This document shows, one piece after another, positions 1 through 38,600 of a stretch of 64,000 nt of DNA. The stretch's first letter is position 1, and every line of letters starts with the position of its first letter. The position numbers were made by a program, and so were the translations under genes. Source of the stretch: Mizuhopecten yessoensis (lineage: Eukaryota); contig NW_018479986.1 in NCBI RefSeq assembly GCF_002113885.1, positions 124,001-188,000 of the forward strand, in the 5' to 3' direction. A model generated the notes under the pieces. The model searched no databases, was not told the origin of the DNA, and saw nothing but the letters and a program-made list of their open reading frames with translations.

Positions 1-616
1 GTATAATATAAAATATTCTTTCGCGGTTTGGATTTTTCAAATTATTTCGTGTATATAAACTTTCGTTGTTAGCCCGCACAACGAAATGTAAATGTGAGTT
101 GTTTTCGTTGATCTGACCATCGGTATTTAAACTAAGATAGGAACACGTTTCTTCGTTGTTGTTGTTGTTGTTGTTATGTTGCTGTGACAATATTCATAAT
201 CATACACGTACAATGTATATACCTTTGTGTTCACATTTTTGGTTGAAATAAAGTTCATATAATTGTTACATTTTCGTTGGTTATATTCTTTCGAGTTATA
301 GAAATATTCATTGTATTTATATTCCTGGTTAATTACCAGCCACGAAAAGAACGAAAATGTATACACAACGAACATTTCGTGTTATAAAGTATGTTAAAAT
401 TATGCCATGATAGTCTTATATTTGATCATTATTTTAACATAAAATCTGTAGGCTTACAAATATTATACTGTAAACAGAAATTATCAACTCAATGTTGATA
501 TAAATATCCACGTGCCACTTGACTAATTTTACATAACAATTCTTGTTTCTTTACACCATGATATATATATCTTCTAACAATTTAAATGTACATTTTTTTC
601 CATCGCATTACCATAC

Positions 617-8700: not shown

Positions 8701-9888
8701 CATACATCTTTCTTTCGCCGCGATTTTTACAATGGCCTTGTTGATGACGCGCATGCGGTAAAACTACATCACTGATCTTGGTTAAGTGAGAGTTTTAGAC
8801 TGTCAGGTGACGATTTAGGATTTCTTAGGACACCATTAAAACATGACTTTAGATCATGTACAATGTATCAGGATAACACTAGTTTACAGATTTAATTTAA
8901 ACAAACAGGCTAAGCATCACACGCACGAATTTTCAGATTGATGTCATTAATGTCCAGCTACATAACCCTAATCGGATAATATTCTTAGAAAAAGCTAGAA
9001 TGCCTTGCGTCATCAAACTCGGACTATGTGGAAAAGTTTCCATATGTCTTCACTTTTACAGGATTCGTTCAAAACGTCAATTGAAGTGAATTAAGTCAAT
9101 ACCCAGATTTTACCCATCCTCCCCTAATTTTTTACTTGTAAAATGGGCCATCCGCCTTACCAGAAACAAGGACCTAATTTTTCATGTAATAGGCTGTCGC
9201 AAAAAATAAATACAAAAAATTGTCCACTCGGCATTATAAAAGTCCTATCTTGTCTTTTTTATTCCAGATTTTACCCATCCTCCCCTAATTTTTTACTTGT
9301 AAAATGGCCCATCCGCCTGACAAGAAACAAGGATCTAATTGTTTTTAGCCTAATACATTTAATACATTTTTATATTAATATATTGAGATAAAAACACTTC
9401 ATAAAACAAGAACATCGCAATTGGTATCGTATTTATTTTCAGTTTTCATAGTCAGTTATTCATACTTCATACAAGAAGCAATACAAACGATTGTGACCTT
9501 GGCACAGTAATGTAACGTAAACAATACAAATATTATATATATACTACAAAACAGCTGGCAGACCTTGCACACAACTCACATACACACTTACAAACGCTCT
9601 CATTCATAAATGTTTGTTTGTTTGTTTGTTTATGTTTAACGGCCCATCGACGGCTGTGGTCATTTAGGGCCATGGTGATTTATTTATTTATTTTACTTTT
9701 TTAACAAACATGTGAATAGCGAAGATAAAATCAGATAAAATGGTTCATTTTAAACGTATTCGCATTGTATGTGTAGATAATAAAAAATAATAAAAGGGGG
9801 TTAAAATAATAAAAGAGATAACGAATAGATGATATGGAATATGCGATATATATATAACGTCAAAAAGGATAAGGTGGGTTAAAAGACA

Positions 9889-12800
9889 TCAGAGTCTATA
9901 AAATAGACCGATGTCTTTCAAATAGTTAAATAATGCCTTCGAATCCACGGAACTGAAAAGTGTTTTCATATCCGGGACTCGGAAGTAGTTATCACGAATG
10001 TGTTTAAAATCGGAACATTCTATTAAAAAATGCTCCACTGTAAATGGAGTGTCACATGCGTGGCATGAAGGTATATCTTCTCGTTTTAAAAGGTACGAAT
10101 GAGTAGGATATGTGTGCCCAGTGCGGAGCCGAGCGAGGACAACTTCCTCTCTACGATCTTTCCGACTGGGAATAGATGTTTTAAGTTTCGGTTGTATCTT
10201 AAAAAGTTTGTTGTTGGTCTCCAGAGACCAGCGTTTCTGCCATTCATTTTGAATGGCTGTACGAATAGTAGGTTTAAAATCTGTGTATGGTAGTTTGATA
10301 TTTGTTTGTTCGAGATTCAATGCATTTTTTGCTTCCCTGTCAGCAAATTCGTTGCCTTTTATTCCGACATGGCTCGGAATCCATAGTAAAGTTATTTTAG
10401 ACTTTTTTAATATACGAGATATTCGAAGAGCAAGGTTTTGTACGATTGTGTTTTTAGGATCTCGTAACTGTAAACTCTGTAGGACAGATAGAGAGTCTGA
10501 ACAAATAATTGCCTTTTTAATGCGGTGTTCATCGATATGGTCGAGGGCCAAACCAATGGCGCATGCTTCAGCAGAAAAGATGGAGGCGCCGTCTGGTAGT
10601 CGGACTGAAGTGCAAGTATTGGCAGTACAGCAGGCTGCTGCCACTTTCTCACCTTCTTTGGAGCCATCGGTGTAAAGTTGTGTATGAGAAGGGTAATTCG
10701 AAATGCATTCCCGAAAGGAGGATTTGTGTTCTTCGGGCATAACACTTGATTTCCCTCGCTCATGTAATGTAAAGTTAAAATCAGGGGTTTAAATGGTCCA
10801 CGGAGGAACATCTGATATGTTAAATTCAGCTATGTCCGTCAATTTTATGTTGAGTTCTTGCAGGAAATTCAAAATTCGGATACCAAATGTTGGCAGAAGT
10901 TTTTGGTTTTGCGTAAATATGTTTTGGTATTTGGGGTTGAATACTTGGTCGAAAGCAGGATTTTTAGGGTTTGATTTTAATTGAGCTGCAAATTGTAATG
11001 AAAGTTTTTTTTCTTCTGTCATAAAGGGATGGTTCATTTGCCTCCACGTACAGGCTTTTTACAGGTGTTGTTCGAAAAGCTCCAAGGGCTCGACGTAGCC
11101 CTTGGTTATGGATTGGGTCTAGCATCTGAAGGTACGAACTGCGCGCCGACCCGTATACCATAGAACCATAATCCAGTTTTGTTCGAATAAGTGATCTGTA
11201 TAGGCGCAAAAGCATTTCCCGACCCGCTCCCCAATCAGTATGAGAAAGGACTCGTATGTATAACGCCTTGGAACACTTATCCTTCAGATACTTTATATGT
11301 GGTATGAAAGAGAGTTTCGAATCAAAAATGAGGCCGAGAAATTTAGTCTGTTCAACAACAGGAATTCTAGTGCCATCGAGTGTTAGATTTGGGTCATTGT
11401 GTGCTTTTCGTTTTTGACAGAAATGCATGCACACAGTTTTGGATTTAGAGAATTTGAAGCCGTTTTCGTCTGCCCAATTTTGTAGTTTGTTTAAACTCTG
11501 TTGAAGTTGTCGTTCTATCGTGTGCATGTTCTTAGATCTGTAACAGATCAAGAAGTCATCCACAAATAACGACCCTTCTGTTGATTGACCAAGACATTTG
11601 ACTATATCATTGATTTTAAGACCAAACAGTGTGACTGATAGGATTCCACCCTGTGGGACTCCCATTTCCTGTTTAGACGTTTCAGAAAAAGTTGAACCAA
11701 CACGGACTTTGAAGTGTCTATCTGATAGGTAATTAGATATAAAATTGGGAAGGTTTCCACGTACGCCAAGGTCGTGAAGATCTTTCATGATGCCATACTG
11801 CCATGTAGTATCATAGGCCTTCTCAAGATCGAAGAACACAGCGACAAGGTGTTCTTTCTTGGCGAAAGCCTCTCGAATGAACGTCTCTAATCTGATGAGA
11901 TGGTCATTTGTCCCTCTTCTATTTCTAAAGCCACTTTGAAGAGGGGATATTATATCGTTGGCCTCAAGAAACCAAACCAGTCTAGTGTTTATCATTCGTT
12001 CCAAAGTTTTACATACACAACTAGTCAGAGAGATAGGACGATAGTTGTTTGGGTCAGTAGCATCTTTTCCCGGTTTTGGGATAGGTATAATTGTGGAGTT
12101 CTTCCACGAATCGGGAATCTTTCCGGAAGCGTAAACTTGGTTGAATATGTAAAGAAGGCATGTTAGTGAAGAGTCCGGTAAGTGCTTTAGAAATTGATAT
12201 GGAATATCATCAGGACCTGAAGCAGTGTCCTGTGATTTTCTAAGCGAATCAACAAGTTCTGGTAGGGTAAATTGTTCATTATAACTTTCTTTGTTTGATG
12301 ATTTGAAATTGAGCCGTTTCTTTTCTCTCTTTTTTTTCAAAGACTGGAATTTTTGGGAGTGGTTTAAAGGGGATGAGTTTTTAGCTATGTTTTTTGCAAA
12401 TGCATCAGCAATTTCAGTTATAGACGAGAAAATTTTGTTTTTATTAATGAGGTGGGAGGATGTTGCCTTTTTCTTTTTCCCACTTATTTTCCGAATCATA
12501 TCCCATACTTTTTTGGAGGACGTGTTTGATGATATCTTGGATACATATTCTCTCCAGCTGTTTCTTTTGTCAATTTTAATTGATCGCCGAGCCTTTGCCC
12601 GCCAAATTTTAAATTCACTGTAGTTTGAAGCAGTTGGGCAATTGAAGTAGCGTCTTAGAGCAGCTGCCCGATTACTGCGTGTTTCAAAAGATTCTTCAGA
12701 TAAAAGGAACTTCGTAGGTTTTGGAGCGGATTTTGGAATTGTCTTTTGGGCAATTGAAGTGAGTGTTTCAGTAAAAGTTTTGATAGGGTCGTCGAGGTTA

Positions 12801-13549
12801 GTAAAATTGTCTATGGTTAGTTTTTCAATGCACATGTGTTGGAATTGGGCCCAATCTGCTTTGTGCATATTCCATCGAGGTAGAGGATCATCAAGAGGAG
12901 TCCCAATATTCTGAAGAAAAATTGGGAAGTGGTCACTCCCACAAAGATCATCATTTACCCTCCAGTCATAGTCAAGTAAAATGGATGGATGGCATAATGA
13001 TAGATCAATGTGGGTACGAGAGCCTGTAGCAGGGTGTAAATAAGTAGGGGTATTGTTGTTAAAAAGGCACAAGTTGTTTTTATCTATAAATTCCTCAATA
13101 CGTCTTCCTCTCTCGTCTGTGTTGGGAGAGCCCCACAGGCTATTATGACCATTAAAATCACCGAGGATTATGAATGGTGTTGGGAGCTGGGAGACGAGAT
13201 TATTGAGTTGCTCACAAGTGAAAACAATACTCGGAGGGAGATAAATTGAACAGACGGTTATTTGTCTGTGTAATGTTGCACAGACAGCAACAGCCTGTAA
13301 ATTTGTGTTTAACTTGATCATTCTGTGAGGAATATTTTTATGGACAGCTACCGCTGCGCCACCTGCTGCTCTGCTAACTACAGTTGGAATGTTAGTGTAG
13401 AGTGAGAAATTTCTAAGCGTGATTGGGTTTTTGAGCATGATTTCTTGTAGACAAAAAATGGCGGGTCTAAATTCTTTTGATAGATTCTGAAATTCTTCTA
13501 TATTTGCCTTTAATCCGCGGATGTTCCATTGGATAATTGTATTATTTAT
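9889..13549 (-). pseudogene. LINE ORF2: AP endonuclease - reverse transcriptase - RNase H, disrupted
   Basis: Frame opens IIQWNIRG..CLQE upstream of Met at 13438; GDFN and SDH (APE); YRPISL, FFDLEKAYD, GVPQG, FVDD (RT); YTDGS, CSDS, WIPSHVGIKGNEFAD (RNase H, 9889-10740); CHAC..H..C. One frameshift in an A-run near 11010 and one in-frame TAA at 10789-10791. Confidence 0.93.
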
Positions 13550-15002
13550 CTTTTGCTATTTTGGCTGGATTTCGATGGAGTCGAAGCACGAAGCGCTGAG
13601 GCATTCGTCTCCATCTCATCATCGAAATCTAGTAGGACATTGAACCGGTTTGTCGGGTCCTCTGATCCTTTGCCAAAGGTGACATTCAGATCAGGTCCAT
13701 TAGATTTGCCCCTCGCTTTTCTAATTTTTTTCCTAGGTCTGTTGGTAGGTGATGTTGCGTCTTGCCTCAGTTGGGACCGAGGAACAGATGTGAGTGAGCG
13801 AGATCGCTGCGACCGCATCTGTGCCCTGGATGGGCCAACCTTTGGAGGGTTTTCTCCTGAAGAGGAAGGTTTTTTCGATGGTGGTGCTGGTTTTGATGGT
13901 GGTGCTGGTTTTGATGAAGATGCTGTTTTTGAGGGTGATGCTGCTTTTGACAGGTTGTTTGGTTTGGTTGATTTGGTTGGTTTGGTTAAAGTCGTGAAGC
14001 GGGATGGGTCCCCCGTGAGGATTTTCAAGTTCTGTTGACCAGCCATGTCTGGGACTTGTGAGCCCCAGGCAGGTATGTCTTCAGAAACTTGAACCGAAGC
14101 ATCCTTGACCGTGACACTGTCAACCGCCGCCTTGCCTCGAGTCACTTGTGCGTAAGAGGGTGTAGCAATGTCTGCACTCCCGACTATCCTCCTGGCCTCG
14201 GGGAAAGAGACACCTCGGGTATATTTAACCCGTAATATCTCCCTCTCCTGGCTCCAGGTAGGGCAGTCGCGAGAAGAGGCAGCGTGCTTCACCTCACAGT
14301 TGACACAGCACAGGTTGGCGATGTCACATTTTGCTCGGTGTGACCCTCACGGCCACAATACTGGCAGATCGATTTTCGTCTACATCGCTTTTCGTGATGA
14401 CCGTACTTCTGACAGTTTCGGCATCGCAATGGATTTGGGATGTAGACGGAAACGTTGTTCCTCTCGTATCCGATTGTTAGTATATGGGGTAGTGTTGGCG
14501 TTGAAAAAGTGATGATGAAGGTGTTTGTTTTGATAGCATCATTGTATCTCCTGATCACCATCCGCCTCACCTCAGAGACCGGGACGCTCTCCTCCTGGAA
14601 ATATGCCAGTATGTCTTCGTCGGTGTCATTGCGCAAGGCAGGGCACCTGATTACCCCCTTGCTGCAATTAAGTGATGAGTGTGGTTTCACACTGACACCG
14701 ATGCCGGCAAAACTGGTTGTTCCGAGTAGGTTCATCGCATGTTGTTGGCGATAAACCTCTACAAGGAGATCGCCCGATCCCAATGACTTAACGGATTTCA
14801 CATCCCCTGCGATTCCCTGGATGCCCTTCCTCAACAGAAGTGGCGACAACGCGGCCGTTGTTTTACCACTCTGTGTGGAGGTCATTGCAAGGAATTGCGG
14901 GAATTGGGTGTTCTGTGTTGCGTTTTGTGTTGTTTTTGAGCTAGGGTCATCGTTGCTGATTTTGGTATGTCCGTCGTTTTGGTGGTTTTTATCTTTACCC
15001 AT
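13546..15002 (-). pseudogene. LINE ORF1 nucleic-acid-binding protein (three zinc knuckles), one frameshift
   Basis: ORFs 14289-15002 and 13546-14292 join through a frameshift near 14330; knuckles CRNCQKYGHHEKRC, CQYCGREGH..C, CVNCEVKHAASSRDC; Ser/Lys/Pro-rich tail. Confidence 0.9.
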
Positions 15003-15426
15003 GTGTATATTTGTTTGTTTTACGATCTATGCCTCCACCCGCCACGGAGCCCAACAAGGGGACCCTGGTGTGACGCGGATATCCAGCGCCAAGTGTCGGA
15101 GATACATAGAATAGTATACTCGTAAGAATATACATACTATTTGAAAGAGTATACTCTCGCAATTGACCCTAAGCCATCGCCTTCTTGGGAGTATGTAAAC
15201 CAAGGGCTCGGCGTGACCAGCCGATTGATGATAGAGGGGCCATATCACCTCTCGTCTACCCAGAGTCCGAAGCCAAAGCAGTATGTTGCAGAATATCGGA
15301 TCATGTCTCCTTCCTATCAAGAGTTTGACAGTGATTCCGACTCAGCTCAACTACCAGGATCTTCTTTCCCCAGGAATACGAGATGCAACCCACGGCAAAC
15401 AGGTTGGCTCAAATTGGAGCTACTGT

Positions 15427-15545
15427 GAAAGCCTTCTGCTACGATGACGCCCAGCGCGCCACAATCATACCCCCGAAATGATCACATACGCACTGAGCAC
15501 CAACGTACCCAGCCTCGGGACGTGGACCCAGCTTTCTTGGAGGCC
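15427..15545 (-). ncRNA. HDV-like self-cleaving ribozyme at the LINE 5' terminus
   Basis: P1 GGCCUC/GAGGCU (G1-U wobble); P2 GAAAGCU/GGCUUUC; P3 GGG/CCC with L3 UCCACGU; P1.1 CC/GG; 68-nt P4 hairpin; J4/2 G-C-AGAA with catalytic-position C at 15438; starts at the TSD boundary. Confidence 0.85.
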
Positions 15546-15652
15546 CATTCATAAATGCTCGTCACACCAAAACATGAAGAAAACTACTGTAATAGGCTGT
15601 TGCAAAAAAATAAAATACAAAAACGTATACCAAGTAGACCCAATCTAGCAGC

Positions 15653-16385
15653 AAACTAGAACACTGACAGGTCAGTAAGGGTCCCGTCTTGTGGCAATAT
15701 ATCCCCAATAATCATCAAGAAGCAATCTGCCCATATAGCTGAGCTTGACGTTTGATATGTGGACTTCAAAAAAGAATCGCAAGGAAGCAAAATATACATT
15801 TTACATGTACTAGGATGTGAGTCTTGTTTCCTTCCACCTCCATATTTGATGGGCTAACAGAAATGTAAATACTGGTGCAATACTCATTTGTTAGCTTCGA
15901 ATTGTTTTATTTAACCTTATATACCTCCTCCATCAAGAGCCAGGGTCAAAGTCAGAGATCCACTTTGTCTTTGACCTTTGGAACCGAATGACCTTGACCA
16001 TTAACCCAGTGACCCTGATCTTTGGTCAGTTGACTTAATTCCGACAAACTTTGCTCCTTAATATCATAACAAAATGTTCATCAGTGAAAATACAAAACTT
16101 GACCTTGACACTTTGAAACCCATAACCTGGACCTAAGGTCAGTTGACTCTGTGTTAAGTGCTGAACAACATTGCTTCATAATGTCATAACAAAATGTTCA
16201 TCAAGGAAAAGATACAAAATTTAACCTTGACCTTTGACCCAGTGACCTTGACCTTTGGTCAATTGAGTCCTTAATTAATCTGAGCTACATTGCTTCAAAG
16301 TGTCAAAGCGAAATGTTCACGCGAAAAAATCCAGATTTTGACCAAAATTCTACCCGTGAAGTATATACGATGCCTTATTGAGGCA
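15653..16385. repeat. HINE-like element with TGACCTTGACC-rich ~130-bp internal repeats
   Basis: Repeated TGACCTTGACC(TTTG) and CATAACAAAATGTTCATCA units at 15960-16330; AAACTAG start; terminal GCCTTATTGAGGC hairpin. Confidence 0.5.
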
Positions 16386-35652: not shown

Positions 35653-38600
35653 CTAACAAGGTTTCACATGGGAGATAAATGTATTCATTTGTCGCATGAG
35701 CAGCCTGTTAGCCTCTCGGATACCTGAATTCAGTGACCCATGCGTCGAAGCAAGGTAGTCAATATCTGTAGCCTCGCCGGCAAATAACAGGACAGGCTTG
35801 TTGTCCTTGGCAACAAGGGGCATGGCCAGAATACGGACATCCTCCACTGTCGATCCTACGCGGATGTAGGAGTACGACCCCCTGAACTGTCGGTTTGAAA
35901 ACCACGAGGTTTTTAGGATTGAATCGGGTTCTGGGATAGTTGGGTCGTTGAGAAATTGTCTCAACACCGTGGTAAGCACGAGCGCTATTACGTCATTAGG
36001 GATCGTTTCTATCTCTTTGCCTTCCTCCCCACACAGCCACACGTCGAGTGTATAGGGGTTGGCTGCCATGGCGTTGAATGTGTACAAACATTTAGCCCAG
36101 CTTGGTAAATTCGTGTTTGATTCAGTAGTGTCGTTTCTCCACACCAGTTTCATTCCTTCATGTTGGCTCCAGAAAGGTGTCTTGTAGCGAAGAATGATCT
36201 TACTGGCTGTCCCATATCCCAGCTTTGATATTGACGCAATCTTTTCAAATGGGAGGCCAGGATTAAAAAGTATCTGGTGATCATTTTTAAGGACGCCCAG
36301 AGAAATTGTAACGATCACGTGATCTGCGGTGTACATTATTGCACCATTTTCTGACTCACACAGAACATTTACCTCTTCAGGATTAGTATAGTCGATGTTT
36401 ATCACTTCCGTTTTCAGATGGATTCTTTTGTCGGTTACTGTATGTGCCAGCCTTGATATCAACGCGGAATAACCGCCTGTCAAACTGATGTTGTTGCCAG
36501 GGGTAATGCTATCGGGTATAAACACTGATACATCTTCTAGTGCAGCACCGTGATTTTCCTCCTCCACCTTTGTAAGAGTTCTACAGATATCCTTGAACTC
36601 ATTTCGATCATTATCGGGGAGAGTTTCCACCACCTGATCCAAGCGGTACTGTATGTACTCAAGAATGGTGGGGTAAAGTGTCTTAGATGATGCCGACAAT
36701 TTATTTCCATAGAGCTCTTCTATTATTTTTCTGAATTCCTCTCTTGCTTTTCTTACAAGTTCCTCATTACACTTTGTTCCATTCGAGCCCACATACATCC
36801 CATAATATCTGAAATGAGAATTACTTAGAAAACAAAGGTTCCCTTTAAACTTCATTCATATTTCTAGAATATTAAAGTATGATCTTATTTCATTGCAATC
36901 ACTGAAATATCGTAAATAATCTTACTTCTAGTTTCATGTCCTTACAGCCACGGTCAAAGCAAGACAGGTGCCAAATGAGACCCCGCCGGAGGAAAAAGCA
37001 GTAAGAGAGAAAAGAAAATACAGACCCAAAGCTTTGCACTAGAGGCAGCAGCTCAGCCTTAAATCTCGTCAATGTCCTCTTAGTAGAAGACACATAGGAA
37101 TCTAGGCCCGACATGAATTGAATAAGACATCCAGTAGGAAAGAGAATGTCAATTCTTTCCCCAAACCTGAAAAAGCGCAATTATTCACAATTCTAATTCG
37201 GAGAAGTGATGAAGGGCTTTCAGTTTAACCGATTCCAAACTAGTGGAATTCCCGAATTAACTTTATTTCAAAAGTTACACGAAGTTGGTAGCGAAGGGAA
37301 CTCTTGTGATAGCTTTACTTCTTTTTCATTGCGAATAAGTAGCTATTATGCAGAGGAAAAGCCGCAAGCAATATCCTGGAGCGAGCAATCTGCAGAACTT
37401 ATTTCTCATCAACAATATTTTGGGTTGTACGGAGCAGATAAGAAATAACGGTAATAGGTTATGTTAATCTTTGTAATGGAATATTAACCTGTGAATAGAA
37501 AAAAAAAAGTATATGTAAAGATGAAATAATTTCAAAATGACCTAGATTTATGCTTAACAAACCCCTGGGTAGACAAATCAATTACAGACCGATGGAAATC
37601 AAAAGAGTGAAACATTTCTTTCGTGATAACTGCTATATAATGTCATATTACATCCTAACAGTATGTCATACTATGAGATCTGATATTTTCTTTGGGTGAA
37701 CAATTCAATTCGTGGTTTACCGCACACTATTTGGTTGATACATGAATTCGTATAGTCCGTGTACCCACTCATACGGAGAATTGCTTTATGACATATTTGT
37801 AATTACTTCGTGGACCTATGAACTCGTAGAAGTAGATTACCCACGAAATCAACACGATTAAACACTCAACGAGAATTAGTGATTTCACAGTATACCACTT
37901 ACAGCTTATTTTTGATGACTAACTTGTCCTGTATTAGTCCGTTGTCGATGAGACCGAAAACCGACGACAATTCATTAACTGAAACGTTACCAAGGATGAA
38001 GAAAAACTTACTCGTCCTCTGTCAGATCGCAGTCGATGAGATCAAAAGTCTTCGCCAATTCGTTTACTGGGCCTTTGCCATGGATCCAGGTTGCCCCCAA
38101 CTCTACCGTCGCCGGGTCTTCTGTTTCGCCATCGTCACCAAACGGTACAGAGTGAATTCTACCGCCAATCCTTAAATATACATAGAAGCGTAATGCAAGT
38201 CAGTTCTTTTTTGCTACATACAAGTATACAACTGTCATATTTAACAAAAAGGTAAATAACACAATCTGGATTGCCACAGTTATATCTTTTGAGTAGTGGC
38301 ATGGTCTGTAATACACAAAGGTATCCTCTATTGATTGTATCTATAATCAAGAGAATTTAAGCACCTGCTTCTCTGTTTCCTCAATTTTGTGGTCCCAAGC
38401 ACCTCCGATGAGTCCTATATGGTCAAAACAGCTATAATATGCAGTGTAATTCCTTTTGGTTTGCTGTATCTATCGCTAATTTGTAAGGTGCAGTCACCTG
38501 TGTGTTACGTTCATGTTTCCTAAATTTCAATAACATTTGTTTCGGAACTGTAAAAGACACATTTATCTAAGATCAATGCATTCCAAATAGTCAAAAGGAC

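Follow-up and report, generated by a model that had tools for sequence, protein, structure and literature searches.

The first 119 nt of a two-ORF LINE in the scallop Mizuhopecten yessoensis are best explained, taken as a whole, as a working HDV-like self-cleaving ribozyme that defines the element's 5′ end, a reading to which we assign a probability of about 0.8. The ribozyme lies on the minus strand of the window, by which we mean the whole 64-kb stretch of DNA that was analysed, and element nucleotide n corresponds to window position 15546 minus n on that strand.

The HDV-like fold at the element's 5′ end

The proposed fold consists of the following parts:

15427..15545, minus strand, HDV-like ribozyme fold (element nt 1-119), with the predicted cut between 15546 and 15545
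15511..15545, minus strand, ribozyme core (P1, 5′ strand of P2, P3, and L3)
15545-15540 with 15516-15511, minus strand, P1 (element nt 1-6/30-35), closed by a G1·U wobble
element nt 7-9, minus strand, J1/2
15536-15530 (5′ strand) with 15433-15427 (3′ strand), minus strand, P2 (element nt 10-16/113-119)
15529-15527 with 15519-15517, minus strand, P3 (element nt 17-19/27-29)
15526-15520, minus strand, L3, UCCACGU (element nt 20-26)
15508..15510, minus strand, GG strand of P1.1 (15510-15509), followed by G38 (15508) opposite G107 (15439)
15440..15507, minus strand, P4, a 68-nt G·U-rich hairpin (element nt 39-106) with compensatory changes in scallop relatives
15427..15438, minus strand, J4/2 (CAGAA) with the catalytic-position C15438, then the 3′ strand of P2

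P1.1 pairs C21C22 with G36G37 (element numbering), and P1, P2, P3, and P1.1 lie in the correct order of the nested double pseudoknot that characterizes the HDV class. As is also typical of the class, P1 is closed by the G1·U pair, and L3 carries a leading U, the P1.1-forming C, and a late G; the loop is one base from that of the CPEB3 ribozyme (UUCACGU). C108, the base at the catalytic position (window 15438), opens the 5-nt J4/2 and is followed by A. Compensatory changes occur at the third pair of P1 and at four pairs of P4.

The sequence-only reading had claimed a complete HDV-like fold, and this is borne out: the sequence reads as described, and a strict HDV descriptor of our own, applied to both strands of the 64-kb window, has its single match at 15545-15427 on the minus strand. 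The descriptor matched twice in 40 single-strand shuffles of 64 kb (2.56 Mb, or about one match per 1.3 Mb) and once in 3000 shuffles of the element's 5′ 600 nt. P4 alone folds with z = -4.46 relative to shuffles in folding energy, and the MFE of the whole 119-mer is unexceptional (z = -1.53), being a measure that ignores pseudoknots. Searching Rfam with the site and the window gave no HDV-family match, and 16 relatives gave nothing significant (best L140, E = 0.65). Since the models are family-specific and miss almost all of the related ribozymes too, the missing match is weak evidence against HDV membership. An extra nucleotide in J4/2 and a P1 of 6 bp, both pointed out in the sequence-only reading, are indeed present but are ordinary and no counter-argument, given that a 5-nt J4/2 is found in 10 of 15 related folds and that R2 ribozymes typically have a P1 of 6-7 bp (PMC3774820). 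In itself, the ribozyme is unremarkable for its class.

The host LINE and its genomic copies

The ribozyme fold heads an element of 5933 nt between its TSD copies, with these features:

15546..15557, minus strand, 5′ TSD copy of 12 bp, ending in G15546, which is at -1 relative to the predicted cut
13546..15002, minus strand, ORF1, gag-like with CCHC knuckles, frameshifted near 14292-14328
9889..13549, minus strand, ORF2 with APE endonuclease, RT, and RNase H, frameshifted near 10913-11040
9613..9631, minus strand, (AAAC)n 3′ tail
9601..9612, minus strand, 3′ TSD copy, whose first C could equally be tail

G1 directly adjoins the 12-bp TSD, so the earlier claim that the predicted cleavage site coincides with the element/TSD boundary holds. 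The description of the sequence as intact is right for the ribozyme and wrong for the copy as a whole, which has one frameshift in each ORF. An ORF2 of the APE-RT-RNase H type, TSDs, and a short-repeat tail are those of an I-superfamily LINE, and the two-ORF layout with a CCHC-knuckle ORF1 agrees with Nimb. Ingi elements have a single ORF. Since no named I-superfamily clade other than Nimb and Ingi has been reported in molluscs (PMC10294476), the element is putatively assigned to Nimb, by exclusion. No named clade reference occurs among the best 120 RT matches of a homologue search. The best ORF1 matches are Mizuhopecten yessoensis proteins (96-99%), in agreement with the mollusc origin that had been proposed from the letters of the window; the I/Nimb type proposed there holds as well.

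Several observations concern the surroundings and coding capacity of the element. The region of the first ORF2 codon (13549-13546, minus strand) is AUA-type, a relative (L061) has an AUG that overlaps the ORF1 stop, and an AUG is present at the ORF2 start in 0 of 19 genomic copies; a recently active family thus seems to initiate ORF2 without AUG. Just upstream of the insertion site, 15650-15900 is a repeat of very high depth in sequencing contigs. Some 20 kb upstream and on the strand of the LINE, 35653-36855 (minus strand) holds an ORF of 400 aa whose product has a flavin amine oxidase domain (PF01593) and which is a possible candidate for the source of read-through.

The family is young, with 5′ ends that are 97-100% identical between copies. 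A core 21-mer (nt 17-37, at most two mismatches) has 103 matches in the scallop genome and 0 for the reversed control, so that about 100 genomic copies carry the ribozyme core. Of 30 copies chosen by their ORF1 only, 15 have nt 1 as their first base, and in 19 the start lies within nt 1-5. The flanks of the copies are unrelated to one another, and the predicted cut site is the element's 5′ end across copies; the check on where copies start did not overturn the proposed 5′ end. Base -1 varies (A10/G8/T7/C1), which removes the doubt that a single copy would leave about G15546. A G at position -1 is less favourable in HDV ribozymes, and the 5′ flank of the window copy can pair with the 5′ strand of P1; both may lower the activity of this copy. 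Logan contigs cover the element up to 15545, and as branching among multiple loci would end contigs there too, these ends say nothing about cleavage.

Covariation across copies, which the sequence-only reading had named as a check, is found at the third pair of P1 (C-G in the window copy, U·G in a sister family, and U-A both in L066 and in additional copies), and P1, P1.1, P2, and P3 are kept in diverged relatives. In an eight-row alignment of scallop-type sequences, 95% of the cells are paired under the named structure and five pairs show two-sided change, with 0 of 500 shuffles scoring as high; slid controls are 39-45% paired with at most one two-sided pair. Since only two of its rows are diverged, this alignment alone is modest evidence.

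The sister family, known from a single locus (L009, 1501-1900) and from pattern coordinates (G000 C262, C854, C1671, and others), is 70% identical in ORF1 and 96-100% identical over the first ~400 nt, a pattern suggesting that 5′ UTRs were exchanged recently. At the same locus (L009:1365-1640; G000:C5528), a head-to-tail duplication covers the first 136 nt and with them the entire ribozyme, and pattern spacing suggests a similar duplication of ~120 nt on C76496. In a tandem array that repeats about every 72 nt (G000:C4902:299390-300518), the ribozyme's J4/2-P2 sequence is present in both orientations.

Heads and 5′ UTR domain among relatives

About 100 loci with a related ORF1 were collected, 42 of which have enough upstream sequence. 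A loose HDV parser was dropped for its high null rate, and with the stricter parser used instead, an HDV parse was obtained for 13 of the 42 relatives, for 2 of 420 shuffles, and for none of the reverse strands; as the parser demands pairing, the evidential weight lies in the match rate and the position only. P1, P2, P3, and P1.1 differ in sequence among these relatives yet pair, the tested P1.1 pair being C-G, U-A, or G-C. The catalytic-position C, the A after it, the U/G pattern of L3, and P1.1 are kept in 15 sequence-different folds, in part because the parse imposes them. Two TSD-bounded relatives (L163 and L160) start exactly at P1 and a third (L063) within 1 nt of it, and all three begin with C-G at P1, as the L1Tc ribozyme does.

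In one element, a minimal HDV-like fold without P4 (L077:26-81) lies upstream of a structure resembling the module described below, and L134 and L090 have stacked 5′ modules too. Some loci (L145-L156 and L064) are animal LINEs within bacterial MAG or symbiont assemblies, most likely through contamination of these records by the host animal.

About 20 other relatives have a different module of ~70 nt, here called module X, in the slot of the ribozyme. In it, a C-run and a G-run cross a second helix, and it further has a linker resembling AGAAUA, a small hairpin, and a helix that closes it. Two of its helices show two-sided changes. Examples are:

L161:5461-5530, module X
L071:1308-1391, module X
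L155:5279-5362, module X

Module X begins exactly at the TSD in a sea cucumber copy (L161), and variants do likewise in L158 and L159. Its core 18-mer has 2554 matches in the scallop genome (G000), compared to 4 for the control. A ~70-bp head is common to Nimb-17_LMi, I-3_DR, RTE-9_CPB, and the mollusc LP/MESC SINEs, and the LINE-derived head of the scallop SINE has been linked to two Nimb elements and read as a possible promoter (PMC4758252). Module X is probably this published "LINE-promoter" SINE head (PMC4758252), which would thus likely fill the ribozyme slot in relatives; it is absent from the head of the window copy. The strand order of module X fits none of the HDV, pistol, and twister topologies. 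Further structured 5′ heads of neither the HDV nor the module X type occur in L113, L079, L122, L128, and L162.

On an ORF1 tree, HDV and module X heads interleave, and its well-supported branches force at least eight changes for HDV and at least six for module X, with the head labels of a few loci set by eye and with metagenome contigs that can be chimeric.

Downstream of either type of head, a block found in 55 sequences forms a further conserved structure:

15023..15408, minus strand, structured 5′ UTR domain (element nt 138-523) of at least eight helices, candidate IRES

The extent of this ~390-nt domain was set from 42 non-redundant UTRs, and the columns that covary most strongly fall into helices. 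Tested against a tree-aware null, covariation has E ≤ 0.025 for six pairs, and the eleven best-ranked pairs are each 88-100% paired. Conservation is far greater in the domain than in the head. The domain ends about 20 nt upstream of the ORF1 AUG, and the distance from the last conserved block to this AUG is 30-36 nt in 31 of the 34 sequences measured. Rfam has no match for it. Because the released RNA would have no cap and the UTR of the window copy contains seven upstream AUGs, the domain is read as a candidate IRES that may recruit ribosomes to ORF1. We hold this to be somewhat better than an even bet and the most economical reading of the domain, the alternative being a packaging or ORF2-binding signal. 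Neither the conserved downstream RNA domain nor the exchangeable 5′ slot figured in the sequence-only reading. A broader proposal joins these parts: Nimb-type LINEs as a group would make uncapped RNA by means of an exchangeable 5′ self-cleavage cassette, with HDV-like ribozymes in some lineages and module X serving alike in others, module X would be an undescribed class of ribozyme that cuts at the 5′ end, and the ~390-nt domain would be an undescribed, widely conserved animal IRES. As a conjunction of all three, this proposal is speculative and rather doubtful.

Mechanism, alternatives, and known systems

HDV-like ribozymes cut just 5′ of G1 and leave a 5′-OH RNA that keeps the ribozyme (PMC8256844, PMC3383444), and elements headed by a ribozyme have precedents (PMC6765202, PMC11620745, PMC3383444). 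From the fold and this family chemistry, we infer self-cleavage at G1 in the scallop LINE. A copy of the element would be transcribed from an upstream host promoter, and its RNA would fold as a nested double pseudoknot in which C108 catalyzes the cut just 5′ of G1. The released RNA would have a 5′-OH end and retain the whole ribozyme, so that each new full-length copy would begin at G1 and inherit the ribozyme. On the uncapped RNA, the ~390-nt domain would then bring ribosomes to ORF1 through internal initiation, and the stable fold probably shields the 5′ end as well. Precise 5′ ends arise from internal promoters too, and an internal promoter at the same place, like Pr77 of L1Tc, would be compatible with self-cleavage. 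Release from read-through transcripts by self-cleavage, as the sequence-only reading had proposed, is supported overall, and the checks run against it, on start positions and on P1-P3 pairing, left it standing.

An HDV-like fold that is real but has slow or no cleavage in vivo, acting as a 5′ shield or in ORF2 binding while an internal promoter starts at G1, would be in keeping with three observations. A thermodynamically stable HDV-like fold improves the insertion of R2 templates, which the authors of that study link to less 5′ degradation (PMC11331408); the first 77 nt of L1Tc double as a promoter (PMC3383444); and in relatives the ribozyme is replaced by a module that has probably been described as a putative LINE promoter (PMC4758252). 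However, a purely protective fold has no need of the catalytic-position C, the next A, the L3 U/G pattern, and P1.1 that are kept in the 15 folds, or of a P1 that sits at the element end in independent lineages, and we consider this account unlikely. It is also quite improbable that the ancestral start lies near nt 118-121 (CAGUAG, initiator-like), with a promoter in the downstream domain and the ribozyme as an accessory head of some copies. Such a start would suit the far greater conservation of the downstream domain and the three of 11 internally truncated copies (L039, L047, and L051) whose first base is nt 117 or 118 (P of about 0.003, post hoc). This cluster, however, lies where P2 ends on its 3′ side (nt 119), and stalling of RT at the folded ribozyme would account for it just as well, so that it could represent either a second start site or an RT stall. 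Moreover, genome counts do not jump there (103 for the core, 109 for nt 104-121, about 10 of them from one tandem array, and 104 for nt 121-138), and by these counts starts at nt 117-118 are a small class. A chance resemblance to HDV would accord with the missing Rfam match and the MFE of the 119-mer (z = -1.53), but it is refuted by the low null rates, the coincidence of the cut with the TSD, the two-sided and compensatory changes, and the recurrence of the fold in distant relatives, TSD-bounded ones included, and is barely credible.

HDV-like heads have been reported for R2, R4, R6, RTE, SART, Baggins, and L1Tc/ingi (PMC11620745, PMC6765202, PMC3774820). For RTE, Baggins, SART, R4, and R6, as the original work is relayed in later papers (Ruminski et al. 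2011, via PMC11620745, PMC6765202), the fold, its position, the predicted cut at the first base, and the proposed release from host co-transcripts are alike; compared to these elements as there described, the scallop LINE adds a large covarying domain, and among relatives either this type of head or a non-HDV module occupies the slot. L1TcRz/Pr77 of the trypanosomatid L1Tc-ingi elements likewise heads a dispersed, RNase H-containing APE LINE with TSDs in which the ribozyme comes first (PMC3185411, PMC3383444, PMC4035085). Tandem duplication of the head is common to both systems (SIDER2 in that of L1Tc, L009 here), and an IRES has been proposed downstream in both. However, L1Tc codes for a single protein, and its head, of 77 nt, has been shown to act as a promoter, whereas the scallop LINE has a gag-like ORF1 and a 119-nt ribozyme with a long P4. 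The R2 ribozyme has the HDV fold, a P1 of 6-7 bp, and a variable P4 in common with it, but R2 is an rDNA-specific RLE element that is released from a co-transcript with 28S by a cut that often falls within 28S sequence (PMC3774820), whereas the scallop family has unrelated insertion sites and a P1 that is wholly element-encoded.

No report of an HDV-like head in Nimb was found in the literature compared, outside which lay the originals of Ruminski 2011 and Webb 2009. In the one paper among these that mentions both Nimb and a ribozyme, no ribozyme is assigned to Nimb, and a 2026 ribozyme preprint leaves Nimb unmentioned. As far as this literature goes, HDV-like 5′ heads are known, and their occurrence in the Nimb clade, the exchange of heads, and the UTR domain appear new.

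Nimb-type LINEs form an animal clade that is usually regarded as promoter-driven. The present reading would extend ribozyme-defined 5′ ends to this widespread clade, for which the young family of ~100 copies is a ready test case. The covarying UTR domain is a concrete candidate for how the uncapped RNA of a self-cleaved retrotransposon gets translated. Finally, the unexplained ~70-bp head of Nimb LINEs and mollusc SINEs gains a testable reading: if it swaps repeatedly with an HDV ribozyme, it may be a candidate for self-cleavage besides being one for a promoter.
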